From contig NIVC01002353.1 of the NCBI GenBank assembly GCA_002269645.1, forward strand, positions 62,001 to 126,000: DNA of 64,000 nt. The letters run 5' to 3'. Below are positions 4,679 through 13,906 of this stretch, piece after piece (within the stretch, counting starts at the first letter, position 1; every line of letters begins with the position of its first letter). The notes beneath the pieces were generated by a model. The model searched no databases. It had not been told where the DNA came from and was given only the letters and a program-made list of their open reading frames with translations. The DNA comes from Macrostomum lignano (Eukaryota). The translations under genes were made by a program, and so were the position numbers.

Positions 4679-7141
4679 CTACCATCTTGGTGCAACAGTG
4701 TTTTCTACATCTCGAACTGAAGCTCCCGAGCCGCTTGATTGATAGTGCACCTTCTTGAGGGCAGCCTGCACCACATTGCTCATCAACATAGCCACGGCCA
4801 GCGGGCCGACACCGCCGGGAACGGGCGAGATGTACGATGTGCGATGCGCCACTTCTTGGAAGTAAACGTCACCGACTAGGCCTTGGCCTAGAGGGGCCAG
4901 ATGTTGTTGCGGTTTTGTCAGTGAACAAAATTAAAGGTGACTTGTTGAATTTTTTTCGAGAATAATTCATTGTACCAATATATGAGCAGAAAACTGAACA
5001 AGCAGTTAATAGGACAGACAGACAGACAGACAGACAGACAGATAGACAGACAGACAGACAGACAGACAGACAGACAGACAGACAGACAGACAGACAGACA
5101 GACAGACAGACAGACAGACAGACAGACAGACAGACAGACAGACAGACAGACAGACAGACAGACAGACAGACAGACAGACAGACAGACAGACAGGCAGGCA
5201 GGCAGGCAGGCAGGCAGGCAGGCAGGCAGGCAGGCAGGCAGGCAGGCAGGCAGGCAGGCAGGCAGGCAGGCAGGCAGGCAGGCAGGCAGGCAGGCAGGCA
5301 GGCAGGCAGGCAGGCAGGCAGGCAGGCAGGCAGGCAGGCAGGCAGGCAGGCAGGCAGGCAGGCAGGCAGGCAGGCAGGCAGGCAGACAGCTAGACAACTC
5401 ACCGTCAGGATTGGTGCTGCAGCCGCAGTCGATTACCAGAGCTCCCTTTCGCACCCAATCTTGTCGCACCAGTTTCGCAACTCCGGCCGCTGCCACCACG
5501 ATTTGTGCACCGGCGGCCAGTTTTTGAGTGTCAATGGTGTCGACGTCGCAGCGGACCACTTGAGCGCCCAGCATTGACAGCAGCATTGCGGTCGGCTTGC
5601 CTACCATGTTGCTGTTACCTGAAAATGTGCAGTTTAAATGTTGATTTTGGTAATCATGGGCGGTAAAAATCCTAGCGATAAATATAAAATGTACGAGAAA
5701 TATATTTCTGGTTATGACGCTTGGCATCATAATATTATACCGTTTTATTCAGTATGTATCTATGCAACTCTTTCTCTTAAAAGTGAAGCAGGGCCAATTC
5801 GTTGTAGAGGAACTTTCGCTCCCTCAGTGTTAAATATTAAGGCTCCACTGCAAGCTACAACTATGAGTAAATATTCACTGTGAAAAAGGCAAATAAACCC
5901 TTCTAATGACAACATGGATCAAATGGATCAAAAGGATCAAAAGTTACAAAGGAACAAAAGTTACTATAACAGTTTAGTACTCCCAGGTGTTGTGTATGAA
6001 CTTAAGTTCTATGATTTATGGGCGAAGCCTTATTCATATTTTAAGTATAGCAGCCAGCTACTTCGCTGCTAAAATATACAGTACGCGCTGCATGCATCTA
6101 CGATCTCTTCCTAACTCGGCACCTTGCATTCGTATTCGTTACTACAAAAAGTACAACACCAGGCGTGTGCCCTATGCTAGTATTATTGCTAGTATTATGC
6201 AATACTACTTACAGTAGTTTCCCCTCAGACGCTAGTAAAGCTTTCCCCTTTGAATGTTAAATTGTCCATAAAGGTAGGAGGTTTTTCAGCTCGAAAGTTG
6301 TGCAGCTCCAGTCCGTTCCTTAAGAGCAAAACTCGCTCATTTTTAGTCGAAGTGTCAAAAGTAAAATCTTTAGCATTAAATTTTAGTCAGAATTTCTGAC
6401 AATTAAAAATATTCCAGCAGTTAACACCAACTCTTGGACTCTGGCATTTTCAGTTCTAGCGGTACACAGTACAGTACTTACTTGCACTACTTATGTCTTC
6501 TGTGCACTCTTATGTGAAGGTATTTACTGCTGGCTCAGGATGTACGCGTATTGAGAAGGAATAACTAAAAAGTTGTGTTCTCCTTTGACTGATTATTCCT
6601 TATTTTAATTGCCAATATTTGTCAGGGATAGCTAAGTATGGTGGCAGCGCTATCAATAGGATTATCTAGCACCTTGACCCAGAAACTTGACCCACCACCT
6701 GAACCCAGCACCTGAACCCAGTTTCCTGACTAAGCACATTGACCTAGAAGCTGACCCAGCAACTTGACCCATCTCCTTGCACCAGATGGGTCAAGTTGCT
6801 GATTCAGTATCTAACCTAGCACATAAACCCAGCTCCTTGACCTACCAATAACCACGGCCACGACGTCCTTCACAGGCACACCGGACATCTTGACAAGCTC
6901 GAGGGAGGCCAACGGAGCGCAGGAGATGAATGCTTCGTCCAGGTTCCCCTGCTGCAGCAGGCGACGGTTCGTGGAGCCTAACCCGTCCACGTCCTTCTTC
7001 GGATCGATAGCGTCCAACAGCCGGTCAACGTTGATCGACGACTGATTGCTGTCGAGCGGCAGCTGAAGGACAATGCCGTTGACGCTGTCGGACTCGTTCA
7101 GCTTCAGGATGTGGCCCAGAACCTCCAGATAGCTGGTCGTA
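4679..7141 (-). CDS. folD: Exons 5-7: methylene-THF dehydrogenase/methenyl-THF cyclohydrolase module
   Basis: 7141-6846 ([23 protein letters not shown]), 5618-5403 ([19 protein letters not shown]), 4887-4679 ([30 protein letters not shown] stop at 4681-4679). There is no formyl-THF synthetase domain. Confidence 0.92.
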
Positions 7142-13100: not shown

Positions 13101-13906
13101 CTAGCATGGCTGATCCACACCGCGCCATTCCCAGCGCCAACACACACCGCGCCGTCCCGCGTGGCCAGCAGTCGGCCCGGCTCTCCGCGCAACTCCTCGC
13201 CCTCCTCTCTATGCGCGCCAAACAGCCGCAACCGACGGCCCAGCAGCGATCCAAGCGCCCCCGGCGTGCTGTCCGAGCAGCGAACCTTCCGCAGCACCGT
13301 CTCCGTATCGTCTGTCCTCCAATCAACCGTCCGCTCACTCGCCTCCATTCTATCGCGCCACTCGCCCCTCGCCGTAGCCTTCTGCATCTCGCCTGGCCGC
13401 TTTGGCGTCCTTGCGCCAGATCGGAACTTCACCAAGAACTCATCCACGCATTCAACCGCGGCGTCGGTGACCGGGCCGCGGTACAAGCTCGCCTTGCTAC
13501 TGCCCTCCGGCACGTGGAAGTCCCGGTGGCTCCACACTGGCCCGCCGTCTAGCTCCTTGTCGGCCTGCAGGAGGGTGACACCCCACTCGGCTTCGCGTCG
13601 CAGCACCGCCCAGTCAAGGGATGACGGGCCACCGTCGGCGACCACCCCGGGATGCAGCACCAGACAGGGCTGGCTGGCGCAGACTGCCGGCGGGATTCGC
13701 CGTGTCAGGAAGGGACAGAGGACGAATTCCGGCTTCACCGCGTCCACATCTCGCTGGATGCTGTCCTCGCTGAGAGCCAGTCGGAACTGGATGCGGTGGC
13801 CGCGGTCCATGAGGTGCGTATGCAGCCGCTGGGTGAGTCCGTTGTAGGCGCTGCTCAACAGGAGAATGTTGTGTGGGCGTTGGGCCAGGGCGCCGATGAG
13901 TTTCAT
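4679..13906 (-). CDS. hoxX: HypX/HoxX (formyltransferase + crotonase-like) - FolD/MTHFD fusion protein, 7 exons, 920 aa
   Basis: Exons (minus): 13906-13031, 12247-11987, 8871-8386, 7988-7570, 7141-6846, 5618-5403, 4887-4679. Lengths 876+261+486+419+296+216+209=2763 nt. All introns are GT-AG with matching phases (0,0,0,2,1,1). HypX motifs: [93 protein letters not shown]. FolD motifs: [38 protein letters not shown]. Confidence 0.9.
5013..5386. repeat. Compound microsatellite (GACA)n-(GGCA)n in intron 6
   Basis: Directly visible tetranucleotide arrays. Confidence 0.98.
6665..7520. repeat. Related degenerate CTTGACCCAG arrays in opposite orientation flanking exon 5
   Basis: 6665-6800 carries cttgaccca units on the + strand; 7270-7520 carries ctgggtcaagg units (the reverse complement). 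A perfect 17-bp hairpin lies at 6758-6800. Confidence 0.7.
7570..7988 (-). CDS. Exon 4: fusion exon (HypX C-terminus, linker, FolD N-terminus)
   Basis: Acceptor cacgcag|[31 protein letters not shown] (HypX end), a D/S-rich linker, then [38 protein letters not shown] (FolD start), all in one stop-free frame. Donor CG|GTGGGT. Confidence 0.9.
8038..8360. repeat. (CTCA)n and GGCGGAGG-type G-rich simple repeats in intron 3
   Basis: Directly visible. Confidence 0.95.
8386..8871 (-). CDS. hoxX: Exon 3: catalytic part of the HypX crotonase-like domain
   Basis: Acceptor aagcag|GAG. Translates [61 protein letters not shown]. Donor CAG|GTGAGG. Confidence 0.9.
9000..11790. repeat. Three polypyrimidine simple-repeat tracts (9000-9410, 9655-9905, 11330-11790) in intron 2
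   Basis: (CTCTCTAT)/(CTCCCCTCT)-type arrays. Confidence 0.95.
11987..12247 (-). CDS. hoxX: Exon 2: start of the HypX enoyl-CoA hydratase/crotonase-like domain
   Basis: Acceptor ccacag|GAA. Translates [55 protein letters not shown]. Donor CAG|GTGCGT. Confidence 0.9.
12285..12960. repeat. G-rich GGCGGAGG(GGC) array filling intron 1
   Basis: Directly visible; source of many spurious Pro/Ser- and Gly/Arg-rich ORFs. Confidence 0.97.
13031..13906 (-). CDS. hoxX: Exon 1: HypX N-terminal formyltransferase domains
   Basis: ATG at 13906 ([19 protein letters not shown]). Formyl_trans_N and Formyl_trans_C-like sequence. Donor GAG|GTGAGG at 13031/13030. Confidence 0.9.

Follow-up and report, generated by a model that had tools for sequence, protein, structure and literature searches.

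A spliced HypX-FolD fusion gene of the flatworm Macrostomum lignano as a candidate folate-fed route to carbon monoxide

We analysed a 64,000-nt stretch of the Macrostomum lignano genome (assembly GCA_002269645.1, contig NIVC01002353.1, positions 62,001-126,000, forward strand), referred to below as the window. On its minus strand the window carries a seven-exon gene whose 920-residue product joins a HypX-like module to a FolD-like methylenetetrahydrofolate dehydrogenase/cyclohydrolase module. Conserved residues and the predicted structure favour, on balance, a single-polypeptide route in which the FolD and HypX modules would convert 5,10-methylene-tetrahydrofolate (methylene-THF) through formyl-THF and formyl-coenzyme A (formyl-CoA) to carbon monoxide (CO). 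If active, the protein would open a folate-linked route to CO or formyl-CoA in Metazoa, second to heme oxygenase and independent of it.

To our knowledge, animals lack [NiFe]-hydrogenase, heme oxygenase is their only established enzymatic source of CO, and the sole known role of HypX is to assist in maturing aerobic [NiFe]-hydrogenases of bacteria. In a 2025 review on how the [NiFe] cofactor is made, HypX figures as a purely bacterial maturation factor. The author of a sequence-only reading of this DNA knew of no description of the architecture. In the full texts searched, neither a HypX-FolD fusion nor a eukaryotic HypX was described, and the locus tag of this gene did not appear. In the databases, however, the exact protein is already deposited, along with well over 60 proteins of the same architecture; when 5.8 billion proteins were searched, about 60 of the best 120 matches were 840-1010 amino acids (aa) long and had the same five domains. 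These sequences are public but automatically annotated and uncharacterised; the enzyme family is known, and the architecture and biological context are new.

Gene model and the fusion exon

Reading the minus strand over 4400-14200 and assembling the exons (Table 1) gave a 2763-nt coding sequence of 920 codons followed by TAG, with no internal stops. All six introns were GT...AG, with phases 0, 0, 0, 2, 1 and 1. A tblastn search with the 920-aa model against the whole window recovered the same seven blocks only and no second copy of the gene. Every exon coordinate of the sequence-only reading was reproduced, as was its consistently phased 920-aa frame.

The two modules meet inside exon 4. One open reading frame (ORF) at 7518-7985 (155 aa) encodes the final helices of HypX (TPERL), then a linker rich in Ser and Asp, then the start of FolD (YIRQK...VEHIRLPR). 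Because the HypX end, the linker and the FolD start are contiguous in one exon, the fusion is independent of splice inference. The earlier reading had placed the fusion in this exon with a linker of about 40 aa and no stop, and an internal ATG (MSKS) at 7790; the linker measured 37 aa and the ATG position was exact. We also tried alternative donors and acceptors between exons 5 and 6 that would regain a canonical GRS motif in the FolD module. Each of them added a stop, shifted the frame or shortened the G-x-S-x-x-V-G motif, and the deposited junction was therefore retained.

The product was 100% identical over 920 aa to GenBank PAA58614.1 (BOX15_Mlig028590g1, M. lignano; UniProt A0A267ECK2), which UniProt automatically names methenyltetrahydrofolate cyclohydrolase. 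The Mlig_3_7 annotation was built from StringTie/TACO RNA-seq assemblies and a de novo transcriptome, with ORFs called by TransDecoder and annotation units divided at trans-splice and poly(A) sites that had been detected by experiment (PMC5730564). Because the deposited annotation is transcript-derived, the fused ORF corresponds to an assembled mRNA. This support for an expressed M. lignano nuclear gene is indirect but real. A second copy, g2 (942 aa, partial), was also fused, and several copies are kept in the genome.

Two observations concern the linker. In the paralog BOX15_Mlig011095g1 (P0121, 692 aa), the protein reads DPQGSVR and then, past the frameshift, VVMMMRAPL, with one G fewer in the linker run of four G (window ~7869-7872); the FolD half is thereby out of frame. 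Either this copy is a genuine HypX-only allele, or the missing G is a homopolymer error of PacBio reads. At 7822-7850, ~30-35 nt upstream of the internal ATG, there is a tract rich in pyrimidines with CAG at its end, which by its sequence could serve as an internal cis-splice or spliced-leader (SL) trans-splice acceptor giving a FolD-only mRNA. Neither the paralog frameshift nor the tract affects the open frame of the window copy.

Long microsatellite or minisatellite arrays lay in five of the six introns, and none reached the score threshold between exons 5 and 6. The arrays lay at 5015-5389, 8109-8357, 9008-9410, 9658-9899, 11437-11790 and 12288-12959. Their units include (CAGG)n, (CGGAGGGG)n, CT-rich 13-mers and 9-mers, and 672 bp of (GGGCGGAG)n; the G-rich strand is the gene's non-coding strand.

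Table 1. Features of the HypX-FolD gene and of its surroundings (window coordinates)
Feature	Position	Strand	Description
Exon 1	13031-13906	-	aa 1-292; ATG 13906-13904; HypX N-terminal formyltransferase-like domain (Formyl_trans_N + _C)
Exon 1 triad codons	His85 13654-13652; Asp91 13636-13634; Asp120 13549-13547	-	
Exon 1 donor	13030	-	gtgagg
Intron 1	12248-13030	-	phase 0; nearly filled by a (GGGCGGAG)n array, 12288-12959
Exon 2	11987-12247	-	aa 293-379; start of the enoyl-CoA-hydratase-like (decarbonylase) domain; CoA-contact residue Asn327
Intron 2	8872-11986	-	3.1 kb; phase 0; several microsatellite arrays
Exon 3	8386-8871	-	aa 380-541; core of the enoyl-CoA-hydratase-like domain
Exon 3 proposed decarbonylation residues	Tyr437 8700-8698; Glu446 8673-8671	-	
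Intron 3	7989-8385	-	phase 0; repeats (CGGAGGGG)n and (GAGT)n
Exon 4 (fusion exon)	7570-7988	-	aa 542-681; HypX C-terminal helices (Arg553), linker, FolD N-terminus
Linker in exon 4	7782-7892	-	aa 574-610 (37 aa); predicted disordered; AlphaFold pLDDT <50
Exon 4 YxxxK motif	Lys663 7625-7623	-	Tyr659, Lys663
Exon 5	6846-7141	-	aa 681-780; rest of the FolD catalytic domain (Gln707, Asp733), start of the dinucleotide-binding domain; preceding intron phase 2
Exon 6	5403-5618	-	aa 780-852; Rossmann-type NAD(P) domain; atypical GNSNMVG (Asn781), then C-D-V (Asp804, Val805)
Exon 7	4679-4887	-	aa 852-920; PVPGGVGP motif, C-terminal helix, TAG stop 4681-4679
DEG/ENaC channel ORF	36586-38229	-	547 aa, uninterrupted; full amiloride-sensitive sodium channel family match, E = 9e-43
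Retroelement ORF	2232-3797	-	aspartyl protease plus reverse transcriptase
Retroelement ORF	29828-31612	-	reverse transcriptase
Tyrosine-recombinase-like ORF, weak	18555-19499	+	

The HypX and FolD modules

A Pfam scan found all five domains in one chain, as the earlier reading had proposed checking, in the order Formyl_trans_N (PF00551), Formyl_trans_C (PF02911), ECH_1 (PF00378, E = 9e-14), THF_DHG_CYH (PF00763, 100 bits) and THF_DHG_CYH_C (PF02882, 156 bits); the last two exceeded their cut-offs. Residues 13-567 aligned with full-length Aquifex aeolicus HypX without major gaps (E = 1e-136), and the alignment ran unbroken across the exon 1/2, 2/3 and 3/4 junctions. The predicted structure of the module matched 6J1I in Foldseek (E = 2.5e-55; target-normalised template modelling (TM) score 0.92; root-mean-square deviation 2.1 Å; 41% identity).

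In Aquifex HypX, His74, Asp80 and Asp109 form the formyl-transfer triad, Tyr416 and Glu426 are required for formyl-CoA decarbonylation, and CoA is a tightly bound prosthetic group rather than a released product; according to the same structural paper, mutations of the Tyr/Glu pair give a HypX-minus phenotype in Ralstonia (Muraki et al. 2019). All five proposed catalytic residues were present in the flatworm protein (His85, Asp91, Asp120, Tyr437 and Glu446). These columns showed no variation across all 73 aligned HypX sequences, and the same held for 21 additional representatives, fungal ones included. We compared the Aquifex CoA-cavity set Gln15, Arg131, Ser194, Gln195, Asn306 and Arg542 and found five of the six kept (Q26, R143, S213, N327 and R553), the Gln195 equivalent being Thr214. 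The module thus shares with HypX/HoxX of Ralstonia eutropha, Rhizobium leguminosarum and A. aeolicus (PDB 6J0P) the two-domain fold, 40-41% identity, the triad, the Tyr/Glu pair and most CoA contacts. It differs from them in being fused to FolD and encoded by a spliced animal gene without hypD or hypE neighbours, in an organism not known to have [NiFe]-hydrogenase or Hyp machinery. We read the HypX part as being of bacterial ancestry and horizontally transferred into eukaryotes.

The FolD module resembled the animal enzyme more closely than the bacterial one. Residues 609-896 matched the dehydrogenase/cyclohydrolase domain of human MTHFD1 with E = 6e-76, compared to 7e-51 or weaker for bacterial FolD, and Foldseek gave a TM score of 0.96 to human MTHFD1 9ISE at 45-46% identity. 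Like the HypX alignment, the one with MTHFD1 continued unbroken over the inferred splice junctions, and both matches lie far outside chance. Against the NCBIfam FolD equivalogs the whole protein scored at best 233 bits, below the cut-off of 396, which is expected because the module is of eukaryotic type. The catalytic set was kept (Y659, K663, Q707 and D733; K663, Q707 and D733 correspond to human Lys56, Gln100 and Asp125). The motifs that contact the 2'-phosphate of NADP were altered, GRSxxVG reading GNSNMVG (Asn781) and C-H-S reading C-D-V (Asp804, Val805). At the first of these positions, Arg was found in 45 of 56 aligned sequences. We take Arg173 and Ser197 of MTHFD1 to be the ligands of this phosphate. 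The changes suggest that the FolD half has altered cofactor specificity and possibly prefers NAD+. Other eukaryotic fusions also deviate at this site (GAS, GKG, CHE and CDI).

Compared to the animal MTHFD1 dehydrogenase/cyclohydrolase domain (PDB 1A4I, 1DIA and 9ISE) and bacterial FolD, the module has the same fold and the same YxxxK, Gln and Asp catalytic residues. It differs from MTHFD1 in its attachment to the C-terminus of HypX, in the replaced NADP 2'-phosphate ligands, and in its lack of a formate-THF ligase domain (no PF01268 match in the Pfam scan of the 920-aa protein). The AlphaFold model, built with 36 homologues, had a mean predicted local distance difference test (pLDDT) score of 83, with confident modules at residues 9-573 and 611-904 and values below 50 at residues 574-610. 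The low-scoring segment is predicted to be a flexible tether between two folded modules.

Among standalone proteins, animal C1-THF synthases came closest to the FolD half (40-46% identity, scores of up to 257 bits), and the FolD halves of other fusions were less similar to it (≤43% identity, ≤226 bits). With moderate tree support, these comparisons suggest that the flatworm FolD half arose from a dehydrogenase/cyclohydrolase domain of MTHFD1 type, eukaryotic or animal in origin. The gene would accordingly be a chimera of a horizontally acquired module and, on that moderate tree support, a host-type module. None of the six introns of a millipede MTHFD1-like gene (L007), the single comparator, exactly matched the three introns of the Macrostomum FolD half; the nearest was 1-2 residues off in a gapped region.

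A further point of comparison is 10-formyl-THF dehydrogenase (ALDH1L1/ALDH1L2), whose N-terminal formyltransferase-like domain is homologous to that of the flatworm protein (E = 1e-10). That enzyme passes the formyl group of 10-formyl-THF to the thiol of a pantetheine arm, setting THF free, and its acyl-carrier-protein-like and aldehyde-dehydrogenase domains yield CO2 and NADPH. The two are alike in concept as enzymes of one-carbon disposal and THF recycling. In the flatworm protein, however, CO would be set free by a crotonase-like domain, and oxidation (by FolD) would take place upstream.

Related fusions, independent joinings and bacterial loci

Both halves were present in 16 of the best 150 clusters from an exhaustive HMMER search against 50%-identity representatives; two of these 16 had the reversed order. 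The HypX-FolD order occurred in Ktedonobacter/Chloroflexi metagenome-assembled genomes, in the bdelloid rotifers Adineta steineri and Rotaria socialis, in the heterolobosean Pharyngomonas kirbyi and in the dinoflagellate Togula jolla. The reversed FolD-HypX order occurred in the Glomeromycota (Gigasporaceae) Cetraspora pellucida and Gigaspora rosea. A gammaproteobacterial metagenome-assembled genome (L038 10001-12632) had hypX followed directly by a separate folD ORF; around the pair lay AraC/DJ-1 regulators, a catalase-peroxidase and a multicopper oxidase, and these flanks held no hyp genes.

The other fusions share the module pair with the flatworm protein, have identical HypX catalytic residues and have linkers of similar length. 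They differ from it in being only 33-45% identical, in the intronless state of the rotifer and fungal genes, and in the reversed domain order of the fungal ones. The nearest relatives of the flatworm protein (P0002-P0005; 40-45% identity) came from contigs of 3-4 kb that each hold a single gene. At least one of these contigs ends just past AATAAA, so that it looks like a eukaryotic mRNA with an uninterrupted fused ORF. The Rotaria gene, without introns, lies between RMI1 and a Cys-loop receptor gene; the Cetraspora gene also has no introns, on a contig of 28% GC. The N-terminal extensions of relatives (25-97 residues, compared to only 13 in the flatworm protein) were basic and mostly had few acidic residues near the start. 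They resemble mitochondrial presequences, and the proteins may be mitochondrial in several lineages. Another set of HypX-like proteins, from Ustilaginomycotina (Testicularia cyperi P0401, Violaceomyces palustris P0384; P0382-P0416), was 800-1180 aa long, lacked FolD and had all five catalytic residues. By their sequences, these are a further uncharacterised eukaryotic HypX group.

The FolD halves of the fusions differed in origin. The Chloroflexi type matched bacterial FolD better than human MTHFD1 (1e-72 versus 1e-61), the P0002 half matched human MTHFD1 better (1e-98 versus 1e-59 for bacterial FolD), and the rotifer half was ambiguous between the two. In bootstrapped neighbour-joining trees, which gave moderate support and placed the eukaryotic sequences on long branches, Macrostomum-type FolD halves grouped with animal MTHFD1 (bootstrap 61-67). 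Chloroflexi-type halves formed one clade (bootstrap 100) among bacterial FolD, with poor support (bootstrap 16) for the exact placement there. Rotifer, protist and fungal halves fell into separate long-branch groups; FolD is of bacterial type in Chloroflexi and forms a separate long-branch clade in rotifers and protists. In the HypX tree, the Macrostomum-type clade had 98% support, the Chloroflexi fusions were nested among bacterial standalone HypX, and the eukaryotes were again long-branched.

Because the FolD halves differ in origin, these data indicate that HypX and FolD came together on at least three occasions: once in Chloroflexi, once (in reversed order) in Gigasporaceae and once in a eukaryotic HypX-FolD group. 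A fourth occasion is probable should the Macrostomum lineage, with its MTHFD1-type FolD, be separate from the rotifer/protist lineage. Repeated independent coupling is much stronger Rosetta-stone evidence than a single fusion. The sequence-only reading had called the gene a Rosetta-stone fusion, in which the second module makes the substrate of the first, and the independent joinings, the reversed order and the adjacent hypX-folD genes strongly support it. With an intact, expressed HypX in the flatworm, convergent fusion of this kind would argue strongly that N10-formyl-THF supply is the limiting partner of HypX chemistry.

Bacterial neighbourhoods were compared between solo and linked loci. 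hypD and/or hypE adjoined hypX in ~22 of 75 solo loci, as in the hypD-hypE-hypX order of Nitrosomonas oligotropha, compared to none of six fusion or adjacent loci; the difference was not statistically significant, and the flanks were short. The contrast is a weak hint, compatible with a hydrogenase-independent role tied to one-carbon supply. Since the available flanks of the Chloroflexi fusions and of the gammaproteobacterial pair were free of hyp genes, HypX may also act independently of hydrogenase in bacteria.

Gene order just upstream of the Chloroflexi fusions is conserved (L001 2105-3052; L002 3061-4613; L003 1722-3140), with a short gene resembling phosphoglycerate dehydrogenase, the first step of serine and one-carbon supply. 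This gene matched TIGR01327 at E about 1e-115, below the cut-off because regulatory domains are missing. A 132-aa ORF (MIYYRVAL...SQSATWRWKS...) that follows this gene was conserved in L002 and L003 and had no family match; the corresponding gap in L001 held ORFs of 47 and 80 aa only. In the FolD halves of the Chloroflexi fusions (L001-L003, L008 and L009), Ile stood at the lysine position of YxxxK (Y-S-K-A-I). Because this lysine is replaced, cyclohydrolase activity may be altered there.

Proposed function, alternatives and surroundings

In the proposed route, the C-terminal FolD/MTHFD1-type module would use NAD(P)+ to oxidise 5,10-methylene-THF to methenyl-THF and would then hydrolyse this to N10-formyl-THF. 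HypX's N-terminal domain (His85/Asp91/Asp120) would move the formyl group onto tightly bound CoA. The CoA arm would then swing into the crotonase-like domain, where Tyr437 and Glu446 would carry out the decarbonylation of formyl-CoA, yielding CO and restoring CoA. Overall, the reaction would be methylene-THF + NAD(P)+ + H2O -> THF + CO + NAD(P)H. We infer each catalytic step, the hand-over of substrate between modules and the release of CO from the known biochemistry of the two families together with conserved residues and the structural model.

Because animals have no [NiFe]-hydrogenase, CO or the accompanying regeneration of THF must serve another purpose if the route operates. By analogy with ALDH1L1, THF-regenerating one-carbon overflow is one candidate; CO acting as an effector is the other. 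Tentatively, and with confidence somewhat short of even, we suggest that hydrogenase-less animals, fungi and protists carry a working folate-fed CO synthase, independent of heme oxygenase and assembled at least three times, in which CO has a role of its own or decarbonylation acts as a THF-regenerating overflow valve. Candidate roles for CO are signalling, control of respiration in dormancy or hypoxia, chemical defence, and service as a ligand for an unrecognised eukaryotic metallocofactor.

Several points weigh against this reading. We know of no CO acceptor in animals. CO inhibits respiration, and a constitutive source of it therefore needs a rationale. Neither hyp nor hydrogenase genes were found in the window or in the available flanks of the bacterial fusion loci, and no hypD or hypE similarity was detected within the 64 kb, where the other ORFs were animal genes or retroelements. 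At the NADP site, Asn781 stands in place of Arg173 of MTHFD1 and Val805, next to Asp804, in place of Ser197, which makes cofactor use, and hence activity, uncertain. Support in the trees, all built by neighbour joining, is moderate and eukaryotic branches are long. The FolD half of the paralog BOX15_Mlig011095g1 is out of frame.

Some of these points would suit an enzyme that stops one step earlier. Formyl-CoA made from the folate pool might be released for a formyl-CoA-using enzyme or hydrolysed to formate, the crotonase-like domain serving as a CoA scaffold only; the conserved triad and CoA contacts, the want of a known CO acceptor in these organisms and the bacterial fusion loci without nearby hyp genes all fit this. 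We nevertheless consider it unlikely, as Tyr437 and Glu446 were invariant in every homologue examined, all eukaryotic ones included, and both the HypX-minus phenotype of Tyr/Glu mutants in Ralstonia and the tight binding of CoA in Aquifex (Muraki et al. 2019) argue against it. It is more improbable still that the modules act as two separate proteins in vivo, through the internal SL acceptor, initiation at the ATG at 7790 or frameshifted alleles, with the fused ORF minor or non-physiological. M. lignano does trans-splice heavily and makes polycistronic precursors (PMC5730564), and the tract upstream of the ATG and the frameshifted paralog point the same way. Yet the transcript-derived model is one 920-aa coding sequence despite the cutting of annotation units at trans-splice sites, copy g2 is fused as well, and relatives carry unbroken fused ORFs in mRNA-like contigs and intronless genes; the paralog frameshift itself falls in a homopolymer of a PacBio-based assembly.

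Were the gene a leftover of horizontal transfer, decaying or neutral and without enzymatic role today, this would fit the patchy eukaryotic distribution, the absence of the expected partner pathway and the atypical NADP site. We judge it very improbable in view of a 920-codon frame intact across six introns, the retention of several genomic copies and catalytic residues conserved among relatives of 34-49% identity. The gene has moreover acquired introns and is expressed according to its transcript-derived annotation, and both modules are predicted to fold well. That HypX is otherwise a prokaryotic family might raise the suspicion of bacterial contamination or of a chimeric model merging neighbouring genes. 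We rejected both, and hold an artefact to be scarcely credible: the gene has six GT-AG introns with eukaryotic microsatellites and lies among metazoan-specific DEG/ENaC and retrotransposon neighbours, the junction is inside a single exon, the FolD half is of animal type, and the rotifer orthologue has RMI1 on one side and a Cys-loop receptor gene on the other. The folate-fed route to CO is the reading we prefer. RNA interference is in use in M. lignano. Transgenesis is established in the same animal (PMC5730564).

The neighbours of the gene include a DEG/ENaC (ASC) channel ORF, ankyrin repeats, and long-terminal-repeat (LTR) and non-LTR retroelement ORFs (Table 1). The channel ORF appears to be an intronless animal channel gene. 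By their sequence matches, the retroelement and recombinase-like ORFs are transposon remnants flanking the HypX-FolD gene. Scans of the window for tRNAs and Rfam families gave no matches. GC content fell sharply to 0.29 at 60001-62000, compared to 0.43-0.69 elsewhere in the window.

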